NCBI GenBank assembly: GCA_022605425.2
Contig: CM061251.1
Coordinates: 434,001-498,000 of the forward strand
Length of the DNA: 64,000 nucleotides
Direction: 5' to 3'
Origin: Hamiltosporidium tvaerminnensis FI-OER-3-3
Lineage: Eukaryota > Fungi > Microsporidia
The notes under the pieces are model-generated. The model had not been told where the DNA came from, made no database searches, and worked only from the letters and a program-made list of their open reading frames with translations. Below are positions 1 through 51,200 of this stretch, piece after piece. Position 1 is the first letter of the stretch; each line of letters opens with the position of its first letter. The translations under genes and the position numbers were made by a program.

Positions 1-1095
1 ATGTGACTTTCTCGAGTACATTTCGGCAAGTAGTTTAATCATACAGGAGACTTGTTCAAACTGTATTCAGACAAAGCAAACAATTGGTTAAATTTTTTTT
101 TAAAAAATAAGCTGGCTTTTTTAGGCCCAATTTTTTTAAAGAATTTAACTACAGAAGTGGTTAAGAAAGATTTTCATATTTGTTTAAAACTCATATAAAT
201 GATAATTGAAACTGAGTATGAGAGTGACTAAATGACTATAGTAAGGGAATCTGCTCTAACGAACAAAAATACTGTGGAATGTCACTAGCCGCCGTAAAAA
301 ATTATGTATACACGTGGTAATTGTAGAAATTTGGCTCTCAAAAGAATTGAAAGCACCAATCCCCTTCATATGTATCTTGCTTATAATATTAAACATAGCT
401 ATTTAAGTTTCTAACTACAATCATACAACGCTACGGAATTTCTTCGACTCATTTTCTGAAGATTAAACATATATTTAAATTGATTTATTAGATGACCATA
501 GTATGTTAATAGTCAAAAACATGCGAAAAAATGAAAAAGCAAAACATATATAAAGAAAGAATTTAAAAGAAAAAGATAATGAATTTTAGTTTAAAATTAT
601 TTTTGCTACAAATACATTTTTCCAGATTTTTTTATATTTTCTTATTTTTTTTAGGTTGAATTCTAATCTCTATATATTAATTTAATTATTTAAGATCTTA
701 GTTCCATAATTTTTTCATTTTTTTTGTTTTTTTTCATATATTATTTATATATGTTGCTAAGCAATCACCCGCCAAATTTCCTAAAATAGTCTTTCCGGGC
801 AAAAAACGCATAAATACATTTATTTTTCAAATTATCCTCATCATAATTAGCTCAGAAAATTTCTACGTTGAATTACCATTGGTTTATTGTAAACAGCAAT
901 AAAGGAGATGGAAGGAGGGAATGAAATTTGAAATATGACAATATTTAACCTTTTTTAGCAGTAATTTTTCTTGATTTGATTTTTCTGATTTTTTTTGAAT
1001 CATTTTTTTAATATGTGTGCAACCCTTTCAGATTGGACTTTAGATAAAGTCCGGAAGAAAAAAAAGTTTTTAAGTTTATTTTTACTCTTATTTAA

Positions 1096-2885
1096 TGTCA
1101 CGGACCAATAAACCCTCTCCCATATCCAATAAAACCCCGTTATTTCATATAACCTTTTATAGTTGATAACACACCTTATTTTTGTATAGCTCTTTTATTC
1201 CCATACTCTATTGTCCTATTCTTCTCCGGTTATTTCTATATACATCTGATTTCAAATTCCTTGGTATTATTTTTTATCCATCCTTTCTTAATATTTTTTT
1301 GCATAAAATGTTAGGATGTGTTAATTATGAATATAATTTCAAATTAAACTTACTTCTTCTTTTCACTTCCCTTTTTGCTTTTTTGTTTCAATTAATGTTT
1401 GTAAACAAAAAATTTATTTAAAACTTATAGGCACAGGTACTTAACAACATAACACAATATACAAATTTATTTGAAGTTTGTTTTTTATTTTTCTTTTCTT
1501 TTATGTTTTCATTATATCTATAAACAAGTGTTGGTGTATATTAACTAATTTGCCAAAATTGTAAGTTGTAGAAACAAAAGAAATGAATGTTCAACAGGCT
1601 ACTTTAAAACCGGATGTATACAGGATTGTGTAGATCATGGAGATAACCAGTTCAACGGTTATTATTTCTGTATTAATATAACTAACACATACACCGAAAC
1701 TTTTAATTTAATAAGATATCTAATAAGACTTTACAATTTGTAAAAGATTCATTGAACTTTAGTTTTAAAATTTATTGTTAAGTTGTTACAAAATATGACA
1801 AGTCGATATAATAAGAATTTACTTCTTGAAATGCTATTGAATTGTCTAGGTATTGAAGTTATACATAGAACACATCGATTTACAAAGTCTAAAGTCAAAG
1901 AAAACGTACCAATCAGACCATAATAGGATGGCTAATAATGAATTTACACCAAATAGATTGAAGAAGATCGATCAGGCATTCTAAACATGCTATTTATTCA
2001 GCTAACGAGACAATACATAGTGCATAAAACACTTCTTATATTTATGTTTTCTTCAGGAAACCAGGTATTAATAATCCATTTGCTGAAGCATATTATTGAA
2101 CCCTAAACTGATAATATATTTTTCATAATTTAGGCAATTTAGTACAGAAATACTTGATGAAAAAGCAAGAAAAGACAGTGGAACCTAGAGATTGCCTCGG
2201 AGTGCATGAATAATTGAATAAACAGGTAAACACTATAATATCATACAAACTGATAATTTCAAAAACAATCGTAAATTTTCAGCGGATGTTGCTAATTTTA
2301 AAAATTATAGAGGAAAAATGTTAGGGAGAAGTAATGCAATTTGCCAGACGAAAGATATTTTTAATGGAGATAAAGTCTTAAAAAAATATTAAGACATGTA
2401 TACAAAAAATAAAATAGTGCATTTGACTCTTTTTAGAATAATTTGGTTTTTAAAGTTACAGCTACTTTGATGAACAGCATCATTGAAGTTAAAAACAATG
2501 ATGGTGGCACAATAATAGTTTATAGGGGTTTAATAAAACGTATTCAATATAATTTGTCTTTTCTGTAATTATAATAGTACATTTTGTATTAGTACAAAGT
2601 TAACCTAATTTTTTTTTATTTTTATTCCGTCAAAATTTTAAAAATTTTAGCTTAAAAAGTATATAAGCACCTTTTTAAATCAACACAAATTAAGTTTAGA
2701 AATAAAATCATTTCCGTTTTTCGAAAATATCGGCTTTAGGTGTAATATATAGAAAATAACGGGGGCTCTATAAATTATATACAATAAAGGGAGTTTTATA
2801 AATCATTAGAAAATAACCAGAAAGGGTTACAGACATAATAGGGGCTCCATTAGACATGAGGGAGGAGGGATTTATTGACCTGCCA
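1096..2885 (+). mobile_element. Decayed Ginger2/TDD-like DDE-integrase DNA transposon, family A, copy 1
   Basis: Imperfect ~50-bp terminal inverted repeats: TGTCACGGACCAATAAACCCTCTCCCATATCCAATAAAACCCCGTTATTTC at 1096, and on the reverse strand from 2885 TGGCAGGTCAATAAATCCCTCC...CATGTCTAATGGAGCCCCTATTAT. The broken + frame reads IQDCVDHGDNQFNGYYFCINITNTYT (~1618-1695; integrase first-Asp region), IHRTHR (~1861) and QWNLEIASECMNN (~2176). Homologous along its length to 47467-49496 in the opposite orientation. Confidence 0.75.
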
Positions 2886-3726
2886 ATTCCATAAAATTCC
2901 GAGTTACAACTTTTTTTATTTTCATATATTTTCTTCTACCTTCTTTAACACAACCGGTTCTTCTTTAAAATCCGACTCTTCACTTATATTTATCGTTGGT
3001 ACCTCAAACGTGGCTTCTCCCTCTGAAATAAAGGGAGTGATATTGTTGGATGTCAACTGTAAAACACTATCTTTTTTATTATTCGCTTCTTTTAAAGTGA
3101 AATGTTGGCTCCTCCGGCATCTAGCCTGTCTCAAAGACACCCATTGGCGCACTTTCACAGCCCTCTTGGCATTAGGTTCCAACTCAAGTCCTCTCCTTCG
3201 GTCAAAAGAAATTATTTCGACTGTCTTCTTGTGTACTATCGACTGAATGTATGTCTCTACATTATGGAGTGTTTGGTGTCTTTTTAGGTGTGACTTATGA
3301 TATTTTGTCATAATACCATTCCGGGTCATTACATAAGAAATTATCTTAACACTACACCTATAAAAAGACCCAACTCATTGACCAGCAGGTCATACTTCCT
3401 AAGTTTTTCAGTTTCTGGTATTTGAAATGAATCTTTTAAAGAAATTCCTACTTCAAAGGTGTTATATTATTCTTCTTCTACCAAGAATAAATATGTCGGG
3501 TCAATTACTCCGGATCTTGACCTCGGTTTTTATCCTGGAATCCACTCTTATCTCAAATGCTTGTTTTCTAGAATTTCTTGAACTGAGTGGCTTCGAATTC
3601 GTTTTGAAGACTTGAACTTATATCTATTTAAGATATGTAAGTGTAGGCCTCATATCACTTCATTATGCCATCTAGTTTAGTCAAGACCGAGCATTTTCCC
3701 ACACCGAGTTGCTAGATGATCTACAT
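2886..3726 (-). mobile_element. 3' fragment of an RLE-type non-LTR retrotransposon (CCHC knuckle remnant, PD-(D/E)xK endonuclease, acidic tail); frameshifted
   Basis: The minus strand translates with frameshifts to VDHLATRCGKMLGLD*TRWHNEV, RIRSHSVQEILEN, KTEVKIRSN*PDIFIL, EVGI...ETEKLRKYDLLVNELG, and then ORF 2922..3329. Homologous to 49500-50345. Confidence 0.85.
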
Positions 3727-3944
3727 TTTTACCCCTCAGAAACTATAAAATTCAATTATATTAAAGTCTTAATGATGAAAGAAAGGAAAAAAGATACGTG
3801 GAATAATTAAATATACAAACCTTTTCCTTTAAAAAAAAATTCATTGGTTACAAAGGTTAAAAACCACATCAATTAAAGGATAGAGCCCGTCTCTATCAAA
3901 GATACCTTCTATATGGGTGCCTCGATAGAGGTTAAGACATTTCT

Positions 3945-4613
3945 ACATAATATTCTGTCTTAATTATATCTTTAATTGGCACATTTTAAAATTCCAAAAC
4001 AACTTTCGGTATATGTGGCGCATTTTTGAAGCAAAGATCATCTCCAAGCATTATAACCTGGTTAGACTTTCTTCTCAAAAGTCTTTTATCTTGTGTAGTA
4101 TAGTTAGCTAGTTACTGTTCGGTCTTCAAAAAAGTCACTTAATTATCTTTTTCTTTCTCGTTTTCGAAAATTACAATCCTTAAAATTTGACCTATATTTT
4201 TTTGCTTTAGTAAAATAAAAATTTAAAAAAAAATAAGAAACAAAGAACTACATTATTTTTAGGAATTTATTGATTATTAAGAGGCTTTTGCTTTGAAATA
4301 TATTTCCTTATAACATGTTATTGCACTTTAAAATATTTATGCAATCTATACTTCAAACAATAAGAAGCGTAAAAATTTACATTGAGATTATTTTATACCT
4401 ATTGCCTGTTAATCGTTTAGAGCAAAGGCTTTAAATTGACCGTAAAAATAGAGGAAATAGCATGGGAGAAATAGATGGTGGAGTAGTTCGAAACATCCCG
4501 GAAATTATAAGGTAGAAAATATAATACAAATAAAATATATCTATTATAAATGAAGAAGGTATAAATATATAAAAGTTTATTAGAAATAACGGGCGGCACT
4601 ATGAACCATGACA
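3945..4613 (-). mobile_element. Ginger-like family B, truncated copy (one terminus and the 5' region)
   Basis: Collinear with ~45830-47313 apart from the insertion there. Ends in ...ATGAACCATGACA (minus strand TGTCATGGTTCAT), matching ...ATGAACCGTGACA at 47313. Confidence 0.8.
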
Positions 4614-14649: not shown

Positions 14650-15290
14650 TTTCAAATTTTCGTTAGAAATAGAAAATCAGTACATCTTTAATGTATCAAT
14701 TGGAGTATTACAAGAAGGAGAAAGTTTACCAAAAAACAAAACTTTTCTATAAATTTATAATGGTAATTTTTGTATAACTTGATTTCGGACCGCGGCTGAA
14801 CTTGTAAGTAATTCGGATTTAAAAAAAAAACCTAACCATGCTCACACAGATTAGGAGAATATGTGTCTAGGATTTATACAAATCAAACTTTCAAAAAAAC
14901 AAAAAACTGGTAGAAGGTTTTAACTGTTGGTATGACTGTGCCCTGTATAGTGAATCTCATATAAGTTGCCGAGGTATATACAACTTAATGCAAATTTGGT
15001 TTGAGATGTCGAGCAAAAGAGATTTTGCATAGAAGAGGGAAGCCCAGTGGGTTTCGACCATCGATGACATTCTATGCAACGGAAAAAACAAACACCAGCC
15101 TACCGCTTCACCCATCAATTAAGTTTTTTACACTTTTTGAAGGATAAGCTTGAGAATGTAGGTGTCATAGAGGTACCGATTATGGGCAAGGTGCTGTTAT
15201 TTATGTTATGCACATAATCGCACGTATGCGCTCGAAAAAAGTCACAATTTTTCGGTTTTATAAATGATGTGTATCTTCGAATAAGGATTT
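14650..15290 (+). mobile_element. Diverged copy 3 of the ~740-bp non-coding element
   Basis: Collinear blocks with 30767-31505: TACATCTT, AAAACTTTT, GCTGAA, AACCTAACC(A/T)TGCTCAC, CTGTT(G/A)GTATGAC, TTATTTATGTTA; CATTCTATGCAACGGA is shared with copy 2. Ends are approximate and no TSD is seen. Confidence 0.75.
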
Positions 15291-27900: not shown

Positions 27901-30766
27901 AAAATTATAAATGCAAAGTTTCGAACTTCGTTAATGTCGTGCTAGCGATTATAACGGAAACTTTTATAAGAATGTTCAATGTTTTCATAATAAAGTATTA
28001 GATTCAGCACAAAAAAACCCTGATAATTTTATTCACATTTTAAAGAAGCCAAGAAGAATCATAAAGTTCTGACTCGGATCCTACAAATTCACATTAGAAC
28101 ATAATATACAGATAATTTAAATATAATTATATGAAATTTTTCTAAGGCTAATAACGAGTTTCCATATTTAAAATGTATCACCGCTTTATACTGATAAATT
28201 AAAACTCTAATTTGTAACAAAACATTTATATTTGTCATATTCAGAGCTTTCGTTTGAAAAGCAAGTGTATTTAGAAAAAACTTGGCGTAAAAATTATAAT
28301 CTTTCTAAAAATACATAAAAAGATTTTAACACATTTTCTGATAGTATGAAATAATATTGGAAGCAAATATATACAAAAAATTAAAGAAATTTATTCGTTC
28401 TACTCAGAATTATGTAAAATATTAGTAGGAAAACATCTATAGTTCTATATGTTAAAAAAACTTGATATTATATTCGACGAGCTTCTATAGCAAAAGAATA
28501 TTTAGTCTACGAAGGTTTGCGAACATTACGGGCGCAATCTATGTACAGGCAAATAACAAATCGACTATAAATTTTAAATTTAAGCGAAATTTGATCATCT
28601 TGTATATTTTTTCTGAAATTTAATATTTTTGAATTAATACTTGTATCTTATTAAACCACTTTTTTAGACTTTCTGCATATTCATTGTAATAGAAATTTAT
28701 TTTGTAATAATGATATGAAATATAGTAAATTGAGATTTCCTACATCTATTTTCTAGGTTTTCGCATTTTTTGGCACAGTGACAATTATAATTTCAGTTCT
28801 ACGCACTGCGGGTATTAGAATTATCTTAGACCGGTAATTGGTCACATTAGAATGTAGAAGTTCTAATACTTTGAAATGTTTCGGACATAATAAAAATACC
28901 ATTTGTACTAATAATTGTATTATTTTAGCTCTTATCTTTGTTGTCAGAATTACTTGGTTGAAACGCAAGGTTTACAAGTTTTGAATTTAATAATAATAAA
29001 TTCTAATATACAACATTCGTTGATATATAGAAAGGCTATTTTAAATCTGATATAATGCTCCTTCAATCTTTAAATCGAGACTTATGGCGAGACTAGTGAC
29101 TTTTTAATTACAATTTGTTACAAAAGGAGAGCTTCTGTCACATTTATTCCCTAAAATATTTTTCTAAAGTATATGCTATATCTCTTCATAGATTTTAATA
29201 ATAAAGCTTGTCATTGTACATATATACGTAAGATTTACAAATAAAATTCATTTTCTTATAAATATAAAACGAATTGTTTACTTAATATAAGCTAAAATCT
29301 AATATAGACTTTAAAAAGATTTAGTATTATACAAAAAACTCGAGAGAGCAAGATAAAAGCTAGAAAAAGAAGATTCCAAAGGGAAAGTATTTCTTCAAGT
29401 GAATTTGTCTTGGGTTCGTTTAACTCGGGTCTTTTTGTCTCATTTCTTCGATTTGTAAAGTTAGGATAAAGAAAGTCTTATATAAATATTTAAACAGAAG
29501 GTTAAATTCATAATAATCATTTTCAAACAAAATTAACAAATTTGAATTTAAATTTATATTTTTTATTTTGCATTCGACCGATGAGAATAGCTATGATGGT
29601 AAAGGATCTGAGATAAGAAAAATTATAGAATATATAAATTAATAGGAAAATATTTACTAGCAGTTATGGTTTTTGCATATAAATTTGCTATTATTTATCT
29701 TGATAGAACTGTTGTTAGGTGTGAAAATTTTCATCCAAAGATTGAAAAGACATTCTAGTACGTGTAAACGTGTGGCAAAACTAACCAATACACCCATAAC
29801 ATAGTTTCTACTTAGAAAAACACGTAAACGTATATCATAATAACAAAAATATCACATATAGAAAGAATGTTATCAAGAATAAGTTCTCATTACCAACAAA
29901 ATGTCTCGAATAGAATCGATTATAAACTCGAATAACATTTTAATTAGAATTTAATAGTCATGAATTCAATATAAGAGATTAAACCTGCTTTTTTTCCAGT
30001 TGACATAAGAAGTTTCCTAGTATTTTTCTTACAAATCTATTTATTTAAGGTACCTAAGACTTCGCAAAAAATTCGAAGCAAAATATTTTATATCATAAAC
30101 CCGTAGACAAAACCCAAGAATGGTAATATACTGAACACTGAAATGATATTAAACCGTATGATTTGCTTGTATAGTTTTGTAATACAATGTAACAATGCTT
30201 TTGTTTGTTTCTCTTGGCAAATAAAAAGGAATGGAAATCCTTTTTTATACCCTTTACTCACCAGCTACGAACTTATAAATACGATAATGCGCATTCCTGC
30301 AACATCAATGGGCAAAAACATTTAATATCAGGTAGGCAAGTAACATATAATATACCTCATATAGGAAAATTACATTACACGAAAAACAAATCACATTCGT
30401 TGCATATATTAAGAGAATACTAAAAAAATGCAAATTGGCTATTTTATATCTTTAATGACGTAAAATGTTTGTTTGGCAAAATTCTGAGTACAGACAGAAG
30501 TGGGATATTCGGAATTTGCGCTCTAAAAACACATGTTTTTTATGTTGCCTAGTATTTTTCAAATATCTCTATCCACGATTAAATTATTTTTATTCGATAT
30601 TATCGATTGTATAAATCGCAATCGAAAAAATATGGAAAAGGTTTACCCTATTACAATCTTAAACGCAAACATCAATGGAATATACACTTCTTTTGTTACA
30701 TATTTATACTCATATTTCCCAATTATGTAGATTTAATATTTATCTTTCATATATATTATCTATTAC

Positions 30767-31505
30767 CAGTGGAGGAAAAATAACTACATAAAAATCTTTC
30801 TGCTTGGCAATGAGTGTGTGAAAGTAGTGTGAGGATCATTGTTTGGATTTTCTGTGGAAATACAACCACACTACATCTTCGGTTGTTCCATGGGAGTTGT
30901 TATGAGGAGGAGGGGTCTAAGAAATGACGAAACTTTTTCTACAAATTTATTTGTAGTTTTTTATGTAACTAGATTGGAGACTGCAGCTGAATTCGTAAGT
31001 ATTATCATATAAAAGCATAGAAACCTAACCTTGCTCACCCGGGTTTGAAGACTTTGCGCCTGGGAGATACAAAACTAAAAACCATTAGAAGCCAAGAAAG
31101 CTAAGTAGCAGGTTATATCTGTTAGTATGACATTGCACTGTCTAGGTAGACCCCATGTAAATCTCTGAAATATATCTTAGCTAAAAGTTGTTGGGTTCAG
31201 AAAGTGTAGAGTAGGTGGAAATGCTGCAAAGTCTTGAGGAGCTCAGGGTGGGCTTCGGCCTTTTATCACACTCAATGCAACTAACATTAACGAACTCCGG
31301 GCAACTGCCTTACCTATTAATTAGGCTCTATATACCTGATAGATGAAAGGCTTTGGAACGTAGGTATCGCAGGGGGTATGATGGTGTATTGGGGGAGCAG
31401 TTATTTATGTTAAACCTAGACATGCGTTAATGTAATGAAAACAAATATAACACTTGTCACTATTATAAAAAGATGTTATACCTATAAATAAAGTTTTATT
31501 TTGTC
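30767..31505 (+). mobile_element. ~740-bp non-coding element, full-length copy 1 (739 bp), flanked by 11-bp direct repeat TTATCTATTAC
   Basis: TTATCTATTAC at 30756-30766 and 31506-31516. Aligns end to end with 46342-47079. More GC-rich than its flanks, with no ORF >=60 aa and no terminal inverted repeats. Confidence 0.9.
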
Positions 31506-34500
31506 TTATCTATTACAATTTCTAAATGAAATATTTAACTATCATTTCACAGCAATATAGATATATCGCTACTTACATTTAATGTTTAGGCCAACCCCCT
31601 GGATATCAATTCTATTGTTTTTTAGCCATGTTGTACAAGAAAACAGATCGGTAGGCTCGGAATATATATTTGCAATATATACAAGGTAACTTTTGGCTAT
31701 TACCAATAACATCCTTTGACGGATTTAAAATGGGTTTTGAAATCATAGAATATTTATTTGCAGAGTAAATAATTTTTTTATGGTTTTATACTACTTGCTT
31801 AAGAATATGATATCATCTGTGGAAGATTTGAGTAAAAAATTGCTTTTATATTGCAGGTTGTTTTGAAACATTATGATTTGTCAAAGTTTATATCGTACAG
31901 TGAAAATCTTGAATTATTTATTTTTCTTATTGTGATTTTTTGTTATAAATTATAATTTAATTTATATCAAAATTAAAGAATTAAATTTGCATTCCAGAAT
32001 TATTATGATTTTTAATCGTAAAGTAATGGATAAATTTTTACCAATATGTAATATAATTTAGTGCTTTGCTTATCTATTGTGCTATAGATTTTTAGAAATG
32101 TAATTCTATGACATACAAAAGCCTACCAGTATTTTTCAATTTGTTATTTTGATCAAGAACCTCAAGATATTTCTTGTAATTTAATCACACATCAAATTTT
32201 CAAATGATGAGTTGAAATTTTTTTGAGCATCATATCAAGTTTATATTGCTATGAAATAACATATAAAGTCACGCTAGTAAATTTTTGAACTAAGGCGTAG
32301 CAAAAAACGAATATTTTTTCATATGATATATTTAATAAAATTAGATTTAAGTTTATACAATTTGAAAATGATTTTTTTACACTTCGAAGAGCTATTTTAA
32401 AATTTTCTATGCTATAAATTAATAAATGCCACTTTTTGTGTTAAAAAACGATGTAGATCTAAATACATTGAATAATAGTGTTTTAAATATGAAGTAAGTA
32501 ATTACTACTTTTCAGTTAGTTGAAACATGTTGAGCAATAATGTATAGGTCGCGATTGAGAGATTTTGGCTTTTAACTTTTTATAAATCATCTAATATGAC
32601 GAAGTTCTTAAAATATATATTTGTAAAATGTTTTGAGTACGAAAATTTCACTAGTGTCAAATTAAAAACTCAATGTCACACTAATCAAATTTTATGAAAA
32701 GAAGTCAAATAGGTATATGTTCTTTACCATCTTACGTAAAACATGAGTTTATAATTTTTTAACAAAAGTTAATATTTTAAGATGATTTGTATTATACATT
32801 TAGACATCGTAACAAATATATCATTTTATATATAACAATTTTGCAATTAACAATTGAAACTTTTAAATTGACTTTTTGACTTTTAAATTTATAATATATA
32901 GAACTTAAATTTAAGATGCATTTGAACAATCTTTTAATAAAATTTTACATTATGTATTTGATTTTTATAGTATATTTTATATTTTTTTTTAAAAATATGT
33001 ACAAAACCTTTTTTTCATTAGAGTGTTTATTTGTCCTACAGATTGAACACAATCTACTCTGAATTAGAGCTTTACCAATATATAGGCGTCAGAGTAAGAT
33101 TTTTCTTATAATTAGCTAACTTGTCGGTCCAACGCAAATTTTATTGTACGAAAGATCAATTGAACACCAGACAGAGACTGGAAACCAGTGTTTCGGAATT
33201 GAATTTCGATTTCCGGATTAGACTTCGGGTATATTCAACTTTATTAACACAAACTATGATCCTTTTTATTATTATTATTTTATAGATCTATTTACCAAGT
33301 AAATGTTTTAAGCAACGTCGTATTGAAAAAATATAACGTTCCTTTGTATCAGTTTTAGTTAATTTGAGAATTTTTTTGATTTAAATTAAAGTTTATTTAA
33401 ATGATAGTTTTTTGTGGCAATCAAAATGTAAAAGTCTTTTTAAAATTATTAACTGTAGGTATTCTTTGTATTTTTCGTATTTATTATCCTCACGAGTATT
33501 TTACTGAGAAATATGATTATTTTGAAAACTTTTATAGTCCATTAAAATTATTTTCTTTTTAAAAATTATTATTAGGGTTTTAACGCAAATCCTGTAGTTG
33601 ATAATTTAAGCACTCCGATTTATATTAGCCACTATATATTACTTCTGAATATTTTTCTGTTATTTCAATTTTCTGATTATTATTAGGGGAAAATATCATC
33701 TAGAAAGTTTAGTGGAAACATGCATATATTTTTTAGAATATTCTAAACAATTTAAAAATTTGTACTGTTTGTTGTTCGAAATAAGCCTAATTTCATTGAA
33801 TGGGCTTTTTCAAGCAAAAATGCTTCTGATATAGTTTTTTTTTTTAAACACTTGCTTATTCATATACCAAGTTGTTGATAATATATTGAGATTATGGGCC
33901 GCAAAATATAGAGTAAGAGAAGAGTATCTAAAGTAAATATTATATACTGATAAATTGCCGAAATAGTGATTATTTAAGCTCTGTATATAAAATATTGAAT
34001 AAAATAAATATCAAACAATTTAAAAGAAATTACAGTCCGATAACAAATATTATGTAGAAGAAAAATATTAAGATATATAGTAGCGAACGTTAGTTAGAAT
34101 AAATTTGATAGGCAGTAGCTGATAACATACGAAAATTTAGAGAAATTTTTAAGACTTAATTTATAATAGAAAATCATTTTGGAAGAATATAAGACGATAT
34201 GGAATTACTGAAATATAAATTAAACACGTAACCTTTATTTAGAAGTGTTTCTTCAAACAACTCTTAATACTATATAATCGAGTGTTTTCTATTATTTACT
34301 GATACTCCTACTAATATTTTTTAAAAATTATTTTAACTGATTTTTCTAAATTGTTATACCAATGACATGATTTATTATATCATAAGTTCTTTTGTAAAAC
34401 CTTATTATAATATTAATTTATATGTGTGTTATTTGTCGAATTCCAATCTGGAATTTTATGTATTATAGCTAGGATTAAATGCTTAATCAATTTTATATTT

Positions 34501-45359: not shown

Positions 45360-46015
45360 CAATCCACGTTTTTATACCAGAAACATATATTTTTTTGGAA
45401 CTCATTTTAATTGTTTGATTTGCCCGTTCAACCTACCCTGAACTTTTGGATTGCGTGGTCTTCAATGTATAAGTTGCATGTTAAGAGCCGTTAAGTGTGT
45501 TTCCATCAATTCATTTTTAAATTCTTTACCATTATCAGACTAAATCGCTATTGGAATGCCGAAATTATCGAATAGAAATTTGAACGGACTGTGAAGTTTT
45601 GTTTTATAGCTTAAAATTCCGGAGATGGTTTGTATAAGATCCGATTACGTTTAAAATTAAATATTTTACATCATTTTGATGCGTATCTTCTAGGATTTAC
45701 ACAATCAATCATATATATAATATTTTTCTGTAAAATTCTTAATATTTATTTGCTGAATTTCCTTCAAAAAATGATATCTAACACTTGACCATGATTTTGC
45801 CTATTCGCTTATGCATGCGTGGGAATTTCATAATATTTTTGTCTAATTAATGTAATCATTCTATTAATTCCACTATGTGCCGCAATAAGTTCTATCTCAA
45901 TTATATGTTTAATTAGCACATTTTGAAATCCAAAAACAACTTTCAGCATATCTGGCGCATGTTTGAAGCAAAGATCATCTCCAAGTATTATAACCTGGTT
46001 ATACTTTCTTCTCAA
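45360..46015 (-). pseudogene. Integrase pseudogene (HHCC zinc-binding region and DDE core) of family B
   Basis: AAHSGINRMITLIRQKYYEIP (ORF 45809..46015) followed by LFDNFGIPIAI*SDNGKEFKNELMETHLTALNMQLIH*RPRNPKVQG...ERANQTIK. This matches the QSDNGxEF and HGRPRxPQxQGxVERxNQT motifs of Ginger2/KRBA2/SCAND3-type integrases. Confidence 0.9.
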
Positions 46016-46341
46016 AAGTCTTTTGTTTGTTTAGTGTATTTAGGTAGTTACTGTTCGGGCTTCAAAAAAACACTAAAATATCATTTTCTTCCTTTTTTTC
46101 GCAAATTGCGATCCTTAGCATTTAACCTACATTATTTTTTGCTATTAGTAAGATAAAATTTAAAAAAAATAAGAAATGAGGAACTACGTTATTTTTAGAG
46201 CTTTATTCATTGTTAAGGGTCTTTTGCTTGGAAATCTATTTCCTATAACATGTTATTGCACTTTAAATATTTATTCAATCTATAATATCAAACAATAAAA
46301 AGTCGTAAAAATTATATTGAGATTATTTTATATCTGTTGCC

Positions 46342-47079
46342 AAGCGGAGGGAGGATAACCACATAAAAAACTTTCTGCTTGGCAATGAGTGTGTGAAACT
46401 GATGTGAGGTCATTGTTTGGATTTTTAGTTGGAATAAAACCACACTACATCTTCGGTTGTTTTATGGGAGGTTGTATGAGCAATAGAGGTCTACGAAATA
46501 GCGAAACTTTTTCTAAAAATTTATTTGTAGTTTTTTATGTAACCAGATTACAGACCGCAGCTGAACATGTAGGTAATTGCCATGTAAAAGCATGGAAACT
46601 TAGCCTTGCTTACTCGGGTTAGAAGACTTAGCGCCTGGGAGATATAAAAATAAAACCCATTAAAAGCCGGGAGAGCTAATTAGCAGGTTATACCTGTTGG
46701 TATGACATTGCACTGTCTAGGTGAACCCCATGTTAGTCTCTGAAATATATCTTAGCTAGAAGTTTATTGGGTTCAGAAAGTGTAGAATAAGTGGGAATGC
46801 TGCATAGTCTTGGGGGGAGCCCATAGGGGCTTCGATCACATTCTATGCAACGGACATTAACGAACTCCGGGCAACTGCCTCGCCTAGTAATTAGGTTCTA
46901 CACTCCTGGTAGATGAAAGTTTTAGGGATAAAGGTATCCCAGGGGTTACCGATGGAGTTTTGGTGGAGCAGTTATTTATGTTAAACCTAGAACTGCGTTA
47001 ATATCATGAAAACAAATATAACACTTGCCACTGTTTTAAAAAAGATGTGATACTTTTAAATAAAGTCTACCAGGGGATT
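46342..47079 (+). mobile_element. ~740-bp non-coding element, full-length copy 2 (738 bp), inserted into Ginger family B
   Basis: Flanked by TATCTGTTGCC (46331-46341) and TATCTATTGCC (47080-47090). The family-B copy at 4396-4406 shows the empty site with a single TACCTATTGCC. Confidence 0.9.
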
Positions 47080-47466
47080 TATCTATTGCCTGTTAATCCT
47101 CTGGATTAAAATACTTTAATCCGAACTTGAAAATATAGGAAATAGCATGGTAGCAATAGATGGTAGGGTAAATACGAAATATCAGGGAAATTACTGGATG
47201 TGAAATATATTACAAATAACATATATCTTTAAAAAAAGGGTGATATTAATATAAAAGGTGTATTAGAAATAACGGGGCACTAAGGACATGCGGGTTCACA
47301 ATGAACCGTGACATATAATGCAAGAAAAAATAAGCTTATAACTGTTAGCGACGACTCAAAATGGCCACAGAAAGAAAATATTTTGCTATGTGAAGAACTA
47401 TATTTTGCTATATCCAGAATAGAAATGTATTCTAGGTGCAGAAGGTATGTAACAACACTGTAATAG

Positions 47467-49496
47467 TGTCACAAACCAATAAACCCCTCCATGCCCAATA
47501 GAACCCCAGTTATTTCCTTTAAGCTCCCTCTCGTTATTTCAATGATTTTATATTCATTGCTCCTCTGAACTACAGCCCTGCATAAACCTTAATCTCCCTC
47601 TGTAATGCCGTCTACTGGCCTCTTTTCAGTCGGTTTGATTACTTTTCTGGGTTTCGTAACAAGGCGTTTAAAAGGGTAGGTTGTCAGCTTCACCTCCAAC
47701 TTGGAGACTATTCCCTTTAGTCACCTCTTACGAAAACCAAGGAATATAACAAGCTTATTCATCCCGCAGCATGGTGGGAAAATGATTTTATATACCTCCG
47801 CATAATTCTATTAATTTTATAAATCTTGGTTATTTCCTAATAATTTATAGAACCTCCCTATTTTGTATATATTACACCTAAAGCCTATATATTCCAAAAA
47901 AGGAAGTGATTAAATTTCTATACTTAATAGGGGTCAATTTAAAAAGGTGCTTGTATGGTTTTTTAGTTAAAATTCCTGCCAAAAAAATTCTTTTAAATTT
48001 TGACAGGATAAAAATAAAAAATGCATTTAATTGCAAACTAGAAAGATTGATAAAATGAAATACATTTTATTGTGCAACTAAAACTTTTGGTGTGTCACCA
48101 TCCTTTTTTTTAATTCAATCATGTTGTTGGTTAAAGTAACTTTAACTTTAAAAAGTAAATTATGGTAAATGGAAGTAAAAGGTGCTATTTTCTTCTTTTT
48201 CTTTATATTGGAATCTTTTTTTCGTTAAGAATGTACCTCTAACAAACAAATCTCTCGAGATGCTTTTTGATTTTTTTCTCTCTACAATTCTTCCCCTTAA
48301 ATTTTAAAAAATTAGCAAAATCGGAAAATTTACGATCGTTTTCGAAATTATTGGTTATTATGGTATTGTGGCGTTTACCAGTTCATTAAATTATTTATGC
48401 ACATTCGAGGCAATCTCTAGGTTCAACCGTTTTAATTTGCTTTTCCAAAAGTGGGACTATACCGAAATCTACCTGAATTGAAAAACAATTCTATCAGTTT
48501 CGGTTTCAAAAATTATGCTTCCAGCAATCTAATTATAAAAGACTTGGAGGATGAAGAAATGCATAAATCGAAGATTTGTTTAGTGCACTCTTTATTGTTT
48601 TGTTAAATACACAAACAAGATGTTTGAATGCTCAATCAACTTTCTTCGAGCGGTTTCATGCAATTCTATTACTAGCTATCTTTTCATGGCGGGTTTGTGT
48701 GTTTAATTTGACTTTGGATTTTGGATTGCGGTGTGTTCTATGTATAACTTTGATACTTAGAAGAGTCATTAGAATTTTAAAAAGTAAATTCTTAAAATAT
48801 ACCCTGATCTATATTTTATAACAACGGAATAATAAAGTGGAAAAACGAGAATTCAATGAATCTTCTGCTAATTGTGAAGTCTTATTAGATATCTTATTAC
48901 CTTGAATGGTTCAGTAATGTGTTGATTATATTAACCCTGCAAAATTAACCATTTTGACTGGTTATCTCAAAGATCTAGACTATCCTGTATACTATTTTTT
49001 TTAAAATATCTGTTAAATTTCCTTTTCTTTTTTTCCGCAAAATAACAATTAAGGCAGATTAGTTTCATGCACCTGCACTTGGTGATACATAAAATGAAAA
49101 CATAGGAGAAAAAAAAAGAAAAAATATAATTGAAACTTCATTGAAATTATTGTACTGTGTTATGTTATTTAGTACAAGTGTCTATAAGTTTTAAATACGT
49201 TTATCGTTTTCAAACATTAATTGAAACAAAAAGGCAAAATTATAAGCCAAAAGAAGCATCTAATTTTTATTCATAATTAACCATCCTAAACTTTTTTATG
49301 CAAAAAAATTTTAAGAAAGCATGCATAAAAAATAATGGGAAGGGATGTGAAATCAGAAGATGCATAGGAATAAATGTGTATAAGAGTTTAAAATAAAAGA
49401 ACTATATAAAAAATAAAGTGTGTTTTCTACTATAAAAAGTATGTAGAAAATAACGGGAGTTCTCTTGGACATGGGGGGGTTTATTTAGCCGACACA
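47467..49496 (-). mobile_element. Ginger2/TDD-like family A, copy 2, with 4-bp TSD ATAG/ATAA
   Basis: TIRs TGTCACAAACCAATAAACCCCTCCATGCCCAATAGAACCCCAGTTATTTC and (reverse) TGTGTCGGCTAAATAAACCCC...CATGTCCAAGAGAACTCCCGTTATTTTC. Flanks are ATAG (47463-66) and ATAA (49497-500). Decayed VIHRTHRNPKS integrase motif on the minus strand near 48710-48750. Confidence 0.85.
47554..47780 (-). mobile_element. RTE-derived SINE-like element (227 bp), copy 1, inside Ginger A copy 2
   Basis: Perfect 13-bp TSD AATGATTTTATAT (47541-47553 and 47781-47793). Homologous end to end with 54768-55000. Confidence 0.9.
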
Positions 49497-51200
49497 ATAA
49501 ATCTTGTAAAACAATAGACCATTTAGCGACTCAATGTGAGAAAAGGCTAGGTCGTGACTACACCAGACGGCATAATCTAATGGTAAGATGCCCGCACCTT
49601 CTTCTCCTAAATAGATTAAGTCTATGTTTTCAAAACGAATTAAGAGTCAGTCGGTTCAAAAGGTTCTGTAAAACGAGCATGCGGAGACACCAGAATAGAA
49701 ACCGATGTCAAAATTTGGAATAATAGACCCGATATATTTATTTTACATAAGAGTAACAAAAAGATTACACTCATTGAAATAAGAATTATTTCCAAGATTT
49801 TACTTCAAATGGTGTAACCGAAAAATCTTATAGAGTTTGATCTGTTAGACAATGAGTTAGATTTTGTTTCTAAATGTATTTAAGATAATCTCCTATGTGA
49901 GGACCTGGGCAGGTATTGCGATAAGACTACCTTAATTCATGGCATAAAAGACTGCAAATACTGATGAATATTGAGACATATATTCAGTCGATTGTATTTA
50001 AGAAGACCCTCGGAACACAGCCCTTTAATAGGTGAAAAGAACTTGAGTCGGGACTAAATGTCGAAGAGTGCTATGAGAGTGTGTCGATAGTGTTATCGAG
50101 CGAGCCAAAAGTCAAGAGGAACCAACACTTTCGTTAAAAAATGCGAGTAACAAGGAAGATGGTGTCAAACATTTTAAAATAAAGAACAATACACCCCTGA
50201 ATTTCAGATGGAAGAACCACATTAGTGGAACCGATGATAAACATAAAGAGGAATTGGATTATAAGACTAAAAATATTGAGGTTAAAGAGGTATAATGAAA
50301 TATATAAAGTGTGACAAAAGTATTCTTATCCAGAAATTTATTGAATAATATCATTTCGGTAAGAATATTAGGCATTATTTTGTTGTTTTTTTGAAAATTT
50401 CAAGCAAAAGAATCAGAACCTTAATAAGAATAAAAATTAGTATAATTTGATCCTCAAGGTAGATTTCTAATCAATAAATTTCCCCATAAAAAATAATAAA
50501 TATAAATTTGTACATTTAAAGATATTTTTTCATTCTTTTTATTCAAGTTATAACACTTCTTACTAAAAATAATGTTATATATAAGCATCCTAATTGATTT
50601 ATTATAAATAGTGACATCAATATAGTATACTTTAACCATCTAGGTATGTCTAGAATCGAGGGGAAACCATACAATGCGACTACTAATTCTATTAATGGAT
50701 TCGCTTGGTATATTTTTAAAGAAAAGCGTTTTAAAAATTGGTTTCACTTTTTGGTGATTACCCATAAAATAATTACATCAAACTTGAGTGATACGTTTAC
50801 ACCTAAATATATTTGCATGGTTTTTCATGATATAAACGTATATTCTTCATTTGGAAAGCTTTTTTTTTTCAAAAAATATTCGAGAACAAATAGGAAAATT
50901 AATTAATCAAAGTTTTAAACAAATGAGATATGTGTAATTTCTTACTTAAATATTTTTTTATAAATTATATTTACATCATTTTATAAGAACTAATGGTTTA
51001 TCAAATAGTAAATTAACAAATATGTAGTTTATTTTGTTTTATCTGTTAAATTTTATTCTGACCAATCCTATTTCAAGATTTCCGGATTTGTTATAAAATA
51101 CTCCTTTAGGTATAATAGGGGTAATCCTTTTTTTTATCTTGAAAGGTATTGGTAGATTTTTGGAAAAGTAAAATTTAAATAGTTAGAAAATGCCGTGTAT

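Follow-up and report, generated by a model that had tools for sequence, protein, structure and literature searches.

Two copies of a non-coding element, 727–729 bp in length, lie within a 64,000 nt window of the Hamiltosporidium tvaerminnensis genome (the window being the whole stretch of DNA that was analysed), and the 11 bp direct repeats on either side of one copy closely resemble those on either side of the other. This raises the question of whether the element inserts at a specific sequence, as the initial annotation proposed for the target TATCTRTTRC, or is a mobile element of another kind. Both copies are on the + strand, at 30769–31493 (copy A) and 46344–47065 (copy B), and are 88 % identical to one another. 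As had been described, neither has terminal inverted repeats, a poly(A) tail or, according to ARAGORN, a tRNA head. The longest sense ORF of the element is 77 aa with a GTG start, in agreement with its being non-coding, and with no long ORF the element is non-autonomous.

Copy A runs from a head, GTGGAGGAAAAATAAC, to a tail, ...ATAAATAAAG, and aligns to positions 1–732 of a young copy. The target-site duplication TTATCTATTAC is located at 30756–30766 and again at 31506–31516. The 2 nt between the left duplication and the head (CA, 30767–30768) may be untemplated or may belong to a 13 bp duplication with one mismatch. The tail is followed by the variable bases TTTTATTTTGTC at 31494–31505, where other copies differ. 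Copy B is arranged likewise on the + strand, with the left duplication TATCTGTTGCC at 46331–46341, 2 extra bases (AA, 46342–46343), a body from GCGGAGGGAGGATAAC to ...CTTTTAAATAAAG, the post-tail variable bases TCTACCAGGGGATT at 47066–47079 and the right duplication TATCTATTGCC at 47080–47090. The window also contains a paralogous repeat that lacks the insertion. To the left of copy B, 45890–46341 aligns with 3953–4406 at 85.6 % identity, and to the right, 47080–47282 aligns with 4396–4601 at 76.4 %. Exactly 11 bp are common to both alignments, namely the single + strand occurrence of TACCTATTGCC (4396–4406), which is therefore a true empty site, as first reported.

The H. tvaerminnensis assembly (21.64 Mb, 17 contigs) was searched with representative natural copies as queries throughout, both for the element and for the LINE considered below. 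For the element there were 1283 first-look matches, and 40 of the 40 copies scored were full length. Approximately 412 intact heads and 475 intact tails are present (25-mers with no more than one mismatch), both strands are evenly represented, and 5′-truncated copies retain the tail. Young copies are 97–98 % alike, with some pairs reaching 99.9 %. Copies A and B, with ~89 % and ~92 % identity to the young subfamily, respectively, are old members of this family of several hundred non-coding retroposons. A degraded old fragment of the family is also found in the window at 14739–15180 (+ strand; 68 % identity to positions 161–617). A further search of the genome for divergent subfamilies yielded the same element family only, and no published description of the element was found.

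Flanking sequence was taken from 34 copies, the majority of them young and among the best-scoring. Duplications of 10–20 bp (median 13) were evident in 28 of the 33 copies examined; the sequences of all 28 are different and AT-rich, and the sole trend that they share is a T-rich bias at the start of the duplication. The duplications of the older copies sampled are likewise unrelated in sequence. The motif TATCTRTTR adjoins 1 of the 334 exact heads genome-wide, that of copy B, and again only in copy B does it follow the tail, among several hundred well-preserved tails (~475 when counted by means of a similar pattern). The initial annotation had itself named arbitrary duplications across the genome as the observation that would speak against sequence-specific insertion, and these are what the sampled copies display. 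Integration at TATCTRTTRC, whether by a site-specific RLE LINE or through a DNA circle recombining across an 11 bp core, is thus extremely improbable, even though the two window duplications agree at 8–9 of 10 positions and two further copies (L003 and L016b) carry TATCTATT near one junction, in differing registers. Among 406 duplication pairs from other copies, agreement at 8 of 10 positions is reached by 7.6 % and agreement at 9 of 10 by 0.25 %. Given that the insertion sites are arbitrary and AT-rich, the motif shared by copies A and B is a coincidence, the likeness having arisen by chance with the help of the AT-rich target composition. A recombination core is expected to vary neither in sequence nor in length; the circle model is therefore contradicted by duplications that vary in both, and extra bases at both junctions also count against it. 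A preference for insertion 30–38 nt upstream of start codons was rejected as well, since L010 alone of the 34 copies fits it, lying 37 nt ahead of a sense ORF of 270 aa.

Both termini of the element are precise. The 5′ end is sharp (GTGGAGGGAGGATAAC) and usually has 1–3 extra bases ahead of it, mostly G. Such bases are present in 22 of 28 copies, and 13 of these 22 have a G directly before the head (P=7×10−7 in comparison with 13.5 % G in the window). The 3′ end, ...TTTTAAATAAAG, is followed by 0–15 variable bases, and what comes after AAATAAAG is unrelated between copies. In one copy, 11 bases follow the tail and are succeeded by A15. A DNA-level repeat, i.e. a solo LTR or a MITE, Helitron or Crypton derivative, could account for the tandem or adjacent copies that are occasionally seen. 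However, variable bases at both junctions, duplications of no fixed length and the lack of terminal inverted repeats make such an origin very unlikely. Solo LTRs have TG...CA termini, a fixed 4–6 bp duplication and counterparts with which they flank a coding interior. The element has the termini GTGG...AAAG and duplications of varying length, no copy pairs around an internal region, and no LTR features were found in it. A MITE or other DNA transposon was rejected on the grounds that the termini are not complementary and, again, that the duplication length is not fixed.

The candidate partner of the element is a LINE of 3.8 kb with hundreds of near-identical copies in the genome. First-look searches returned 1132 matches for its 3′ end and 359 for its 5′ end, many of them 100 % identical, and 466 RT candidates were recovered genome-wide, dozens with an intact ORF of ~1255 aa. 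Judging from these intact ORFs and from 3′ ends that are 100 % identical, the LINE appears to have been active recently. The RT domain occupies residues 504–743, and RVT_1 is the only Pfam match; PF03372 matches are located in other elements, and the LINE has no APE domain. The CCHC, PD, D, E and K columns of its C terminus are invariant or nearly so. A PDB sequence search with the C terminus gave no R2 match and a fold search was needed, in which the top seven PDB matches to the predicted model (pLDDT 78.8) are R2 proteins, with E values of 2×10−7 to 6×10−6. The domain content, the conserved columns and the fold matches place the LINE among the non-LTR retrotransposons of the R2 superfamily (RLE), with the RT in the centre, a CCHC motif and PD-(D/E)XK endonuclease at the C terminus, and no APE. 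The same layout is seen in R2/R4/Dong-type LINEs. Those are site-specific, whereas neither the partner LINE nor the element is: four full LINE copies that were measured are flanked by 12–15 bp duplications of arbitrary AT-rich sequence.

The duplications of element and LINE fall into a common size class (10–20 bp, median 13, n=28, and 12–15 bp, n=4, respectively), and the two end in the same nine bases, TTAAATAAA, for which the chance is ~2.5×10−4 per random genomic position. The likeness of the tails is confined to these 9 nt, and the AAUAAA in both could merely be a polyadenylation signal. Because no internal sequence is common to the two, derivation of the element from the LINE by internal deletion was rejected. 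It is also conceivable, if improbable, that the retroposon is mobilized by other machinery, namely an APE-type LINE of low copy number on contig 1 or the reverse transcriptase of an LTR element. An element with APE and RT is indeed present at C1:588–623 kb, and the element lacks the TTAACCCAGAA box that is conserved in all subfamilies of the RLE LINE here and also in a relative, 59 % identical, from a different sample. However, only ~3 copies of the APE-type LINE were found, its 3′ region is GC-rich, unlike the element tail, and a BLAST comparison of the element with full-length loci of every reverse-transcriptase family sampled revealed no similarity, while the RLE LINE does match the element in duplication length and terminal bases. 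Of the earlier suggestion that a SINE-type RNA copy is moved by a site-specific RLE LINE, the SINE-like character stands and an RLE LINE is the most plausible driver; the site-specificity does not stand for either partner.

Several features bear on the RNA from which the copies derive. No tRNA genes were found by ARAGORN in the window and three loci, and a search of Rfam with copy A and one young copy gave no credible match even at E values up to 10 (best E>1). The 5′ hairpin of the element resembles the bacterial DUF805 motif by chance (Rfam E 6.5). Runs of T5/T6 occur inside the element at positions 79, 165 and 188, and RNA polymerase III is expected to terminate at internal T5–T6 runs. From these runs and from the lack of tRNA and Rfam matches, transcription by Pol III is unlikely. 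The terminal AAUAAA and the A15-tailed copy point instead to Pol II.

With a GC content of 42 %, in comparison with 26 % for the window, the copies could be viewed as processed pseudogenes derived from a host gene for a functional, structured non-coding RNA and not as a dedicated parasite of a LINE. UUCG-type hairpins are present in the element, and one of them stays paired in three old copies through C:G to U:A changes; some local hairpins may be genuine. A global fold, however, is unsupported: the minimum free energy does not improve on that of shuffled sequence (z=−0.63), and the RNAalifold consensus of 12 copies spanning 67–99 % identity is weak (−37.7 kcal/mol; covariation term, +1.05). 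Old copies show a flat conservation profile from end to end, the tail not being clearly constrained, and the absence of Rfam matches likewise argues against a host RNA. Hundreds of near-identical copies are better fitted by a self-propagating family, and a pseudogene origin is accordingly regarded as unlikely.

The element is most probably a SINE-like, LINE-dependent retroposon that inserts at arbitrary AT-rich targets and is copied by the candidate R2-type LINE. Source copies would be transcribed, probably by RNA polymerase II, with the RNA end falling a few bases past its AAUAAA. The R2-superfamily LINE protein, through its RT and C-terminal restriction-like endonuclease, would nick T-rich DNA, and target-primed reverse transcription of the element RNA would start at its UUAAAUAAA 3′ end. 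A second-strand cut ~13 bp away would then give rise to the target duplication, and the extra 5′ bases may stem from the joining of cDNA to upstream DNA. The balance leans slightly towards a broader claim, that the element represents the first SINE-like family to be described in Microsporidia: a recently active 727 nt non-coding retroposon with a polyadenylation signal, probably transcribed by Pol II, that is a parasite of an R2-superfamily LINE essentially without a 5′ UTR and makes up at least 1.5 % (possibly ~4 %) of the genome.

A canonical SINE has a 5′ head that originates from tRNA, 7SL, 5S or snRNA and contains an internal Pol III promoter, and its tail is LINE-derived. The element resembles canonical Pol III SINEs in being non-autonomous, in its high copy number and variable duplications, and in a 3′ terminus like that of a resident LINE. 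It differs from them in lacking a Pol III head, none having been found with ARAGORN or Rfam, in its internal T5–T6 runs and in the terminal AAUAAA and A15-tailed copy, which shift it towards Pol II. At 727 bp it is also at or beyond their usual size.

The closest analogue of the element and its LINE is the EhSINE1/EhLINE1 pair of Entamoeba histolytica. EhSINE1 and the element are both non-coding, non-autonomous sequences of several hundred base pairs, present in hundreds of copies in the small AT-rich genome of a parasite; both are flanked by duplications, of which the empty site holds a single copy. EhLINE1 and the LINE described here both have a restriction-enzyme-like endonuclease, and neither pair is strictly site-specific. 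One of the papers cited in PMC3118788 describes the SINE DNA, in its title, as an abundant polyadenylated transcript. In Entamoeba, mobilization of the SINE by the LINE and the nicking preference have been demonstrated experimentally (PMC3118788, citing Mandal 2004 and Willhoeft 2002), whereas for the pair in H. tvaerminnensis both are inferred. EhSINE1 and the element have no sequence relationship, and the element is longer and has a microsporidian host. Unlike EhSINE1 with EhLINE1, it shares only the 9 nt tail with its LINE. After Entamoeba, this would be a second independent case of a headless, non-autonomous element apparently supported by an RLE-type LINE.

A site-specific non-coding element of a new kind is not upheld by these results, and the remaining findings will chiefly be useful to specialists. 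H. tvaerminnensis serves as a model in the question of why certain microsporidia have large genomes. Interspersed repeats make up 39.6 % of its assembly, and those classed as ‘other’ make up 25.45 % of the genome (PMC10542269). The term SINE is unused in the literature checked on Hamiltosporidium genomes and microsporidian transposable elements. The LINE and its SINE-like partner, with their hundreds of near-identical copies, provide a named component of the unclassified repeat fraction, and if the present interpretation is correct the SINE-like family accounts for part of that ~25 %. Insertions of the element and the LINE could additionally serve as a marker set for population studies of the parasite.

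The RLE LINE is itself represented in the window by old fragments. A 5′-truncated fragment on the − strand (2891–3733) comprises the last ~860 nt, with 78 % nucleotide identity and tblastn matches to the C-terminal domain. A second 3′ fragment is located on the + strand at 49499–50348, with a further piece at 47313–47460.

The window holds two full, non-coding copies of the ~0.73-kb SINE-like element, copy A (30769-31493, + strand) and copy B (46344-47065, + strand), at 88 % identity to each other. Copy A carries TTATCTATTAC on both sides (30756-30766 and 31506-31516); copy B is flanked by TATCTGTTGCC on the left (46331-46341) and TATCTATTGCC on the right (47080-47090). The left flank of copy B (45890-46341) aligns with a paralogous repeat at 3953-4406 of the window and the right flank (47080-47282) with 4396-4601. 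The two alignments overlap by exactly the 11 bases of 4396-4406, a clean filled-versus-empty comparison. Alignment thus bears out the initial annotation, which had described two full copies, bracketing 11-bp direct repeats and a paralogous empty site with a single motif. Its description of an element without a long ORF, TIR or tRNA head also holds: the longest ORF is 77 aa, no tRNA was found in the element and the termini are not inverted. Old, 5′-truncated fragments of a resident 3.8-kb R2-type LINE (the RLE LINE) lie at 2891-3733 (-), 47313-47460 (+) and 49499-50348 (+), within the paralogous blocks 1090-4601 and 45890-50308 previously called Ginger-B; at least part of these blocks is LINE debris.

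From the two copies, site-specific insertion at TATCTRTTRC had been proposed, with the proviso that arbitrary duplications genome-wide would speak against it. The 21.64-Mb assembly (17 contigs), in which the window is C6:434001-498000, yielded 1283 first-look candidates for the element, and all 40 scored matches were full length. Exact 16-mers of the head number 334; 25-mers with at most one mismatch give 412 heads and 475 tails, evenly divided between the strands. Flanks were taken from 34 copies, a modest sample skewed to young copies, and 33 had a recognisable tail. Of these 33, 28 lie between clear direct repeats 10-20 bp long (median 13). No two of the 28 duplications have the same sequence, their sole bias being T-richness around the duplication start. 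Genome-wide patterns for TATCTRTTR joined to the head, and for the tail joined to the motif within 18 bases, each recovered only copy B. Of 406 duplication pairs compared in any register, 7.6 % agreed at no fewer than 8 of 10 positions and 0.25 % at no fewer than 9; for the window pair the figure is 8-9. The likeness of the two window duplications thus lies in the upper tail of what chance gives in AT-rich targets and does not reflect a rule of insertion. The observation was real and its site-specific interpretation wrong, because duplications across the genome are arbitrary.

Young copies are 727-729 bp long with mutual identities of 97-98 % (99.9 % in some pairs). Copies A and B, at ~89 and ~92 % identity to these, are both older members. 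GC content is 42 % in a young copy versus 26 % in the window. The 5′ end is sharp (GTGGAGGGAGGATAACCAC). In 22 of 28 copies the head is preceded by 1-3 bases that are not in the empty site, and in 13 of these 22 a G adjoins the head (P = 7e-7), a pattern compatible either with a G from the cap or with bases added without a template when the cDNA is joined. At the 5′ junction of the L004 copy (G000:C7:805183-805917) part of its own head is duplicated, with ATGTGGAGGGAGGATAACCACAT present twice, as would result if the reverse transcriptase jumped template on completing its copy. The 3′ end reads ...GATAYTTTTAAATAAAG, then 0-15 bases that differ from copy to copy, as would follow from RNA termination or polyadenylation a short way downstream of an AAUAAA signal. 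In one copy (L018:1501-2238; G000:C17:439867-440604) 11 bases followed by A15 separate AAATAAAG from the duplication, the only poly(A)-like tail among copies with extracted flanks. A few copies are 5′-truncated with the tail kept, and tails are slightly more numerous than heads. Internal T5 and T6 runs (positions 79, 165 and 188) speak against the element being transcribed in full by Pol III. An Rfam search of the element returned nothing credible, its global fold was not more stable than shuffles (z = -0.63), and the consensus fold of 12 aligned copies (67-99 % identity) was weak and showed no net covariation; the label ‘structured RNA’ is thus without support globally.

The genome contains at least 466 reverse-transcriptase candidates, the dominant family having intact ORFs of ~1255 aa. 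In a representative 3.81-kb copy (L043:3556-7364; G000:C12 ~291055-294863) the ORF starts at the first base of the LINE (ATGGGTAGAAAG) and stops 46 nt short of the terminus ...TTAACCCAGAATTTTATTAAATAAA(AAT), leaving a 46-nt 3′ UTR. There is essentially no 5′ UTR, and the duplications of four copies abut ATGGGTAGAAAG or ATGATGGG. RVT_1 occupies residues 504-743, and no APE domain was detected in the L043 ORF. In the C-terminal region, C-x2-C...H...C, PD, D, E and K columns are invariant or nearly so across 17 relatives. Compared with PDB folds, the AlphaFold model of this region (mean pLDDT 78.8) matched R2 retrotransposon proteins in the first seven places (E 2e-7 to 6e-6) and PD-(D/E)XK nucleases after them; the predicted fold thus places this LINE in the R2 superfamily (RLE). 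First-look matches number 1132 for the 3′ end versus 359 for the 5′ end and many copies are 100 % identical, which indicates a recently active, often 5′-truncated LINE. About half of the scored 5′ ends reach 40-100 nt further upstream, with 88-95 % identity to the L043 upstream flank (L043:3454-3555; matches such as G000:C6:205044-205502). Such extensions could reflect a LINE variant of greater length, recurrent insertion into a single repeat family or segmental duplication.

At four full LINE copies the ATG directly adjoins duplications of 12-15 bp, AT-rich and unrelated in sequence, which is the same target-site signature as that of the element. The LINE and the element also share the terminus TTAAATAAA, a suffix that a random genomic position would match with a chance of ~2.5e-4. 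Tail identity is limited to 9 nt. The TTAACCCAGAA box is absent from the element, yet conserved in every LINE subfamily here and in a relative of 59 % protein identity found in a different sample (L063:3600-3650; Logan contig SRR21069178_77862), in which it is followed by AATAAATAAAA and the ORF starts with ATGGGTAAAAAGAAA. Since so distant a relative keeps the box, the LINE tail looks like a conserved cis element. The element and the LINE have no internal sequence in common, and an internally deleted LINE is rejected for this reason. The termini and duplications likewise exclude a solo LTR, a MITE and the DNA circle recombining at a shared 11-bp core that the initial annotation had entertained.

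Several hundred dispersed copies with precise ends, variable duplications and an exact empty site thus coexist with an abundant, intact RLE LINE of the same duplication size and terminus. Movement of the element by target-primed reverse transcription is very probable, and we are reasonably confident of a LINE-dependent retroposon as the overall explanation. The RLE LINE is its likely driver; for the APE-type LINE only ~3 copies were found, on contig 1, and its 3′ region is unlike the element's tail. Pol II-type transcription would end after AAUAAA, and the LINE protein would recognise, in trans, the 3′ end of the element RNA. Target-primed reverse transcription of that RNA would then start from a nick in T-rich DNA, and the second strand would be cut ~13 bp away.

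Without a Pol III head, the element differs from a canonical SINE. The closest analogue of the pair is EhSINE/EhLINE of Entamoeba, in which non-coding elements several hundred bp long, likewise without a head, depend for their mobility on a LINE that has a restriction-enzyme-like endonuclease, and a single copy of the duplication marks the empty site (PMC3118788). The word SINE is absent from the literature examined on Hamiltosporidium genomes and microsporidian transposable elements. One paper lists 12 non-LTR families for H. tvaerminnensis, and 25.45 % of the assembly was left as ‘other’ repeats (PMC10542269). The family is undescribed but conceptually ordinary as a LINE-dependent retroposon.

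The APE-type LINE copies form a small cluster at G000:C1:588462-623657 (L032, L033, L048) and have Exo_endo_phos and RVT_1 domains. Their ORFs measure 855-1195 aa, with one of 457 aa upstream, and the flanking DNA is GC-rich, unlike the remainder of the genome. A separate reverse-transcriptase family (L031, L034-L040, L046) has an ORF of ~915-940 aa preceded by one of 329 aa; by sequence, it comes closest in the PDB to the reverse transcriptases of group II introns and retrons. Its loci (G000:C4:7827; C9:2559 and 6055; C13:50903 and 59462; C14:50722; C7:16249) lie for the most part no more than 60 kb from the start of a contig, and it may be a subtelomeric element. Compared with L010:1-3732, a locus carrying the 0.73-kb element, sequencing runs X2, X17 and X18, from samples labelled as three organisms (A, C and D), gave contigs with the element that also carry the L010 flanks at ~97-99 % identity. 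An X18 contig continues from the L010 flank for 28 nt into the element, so the L010 insertion is shared.
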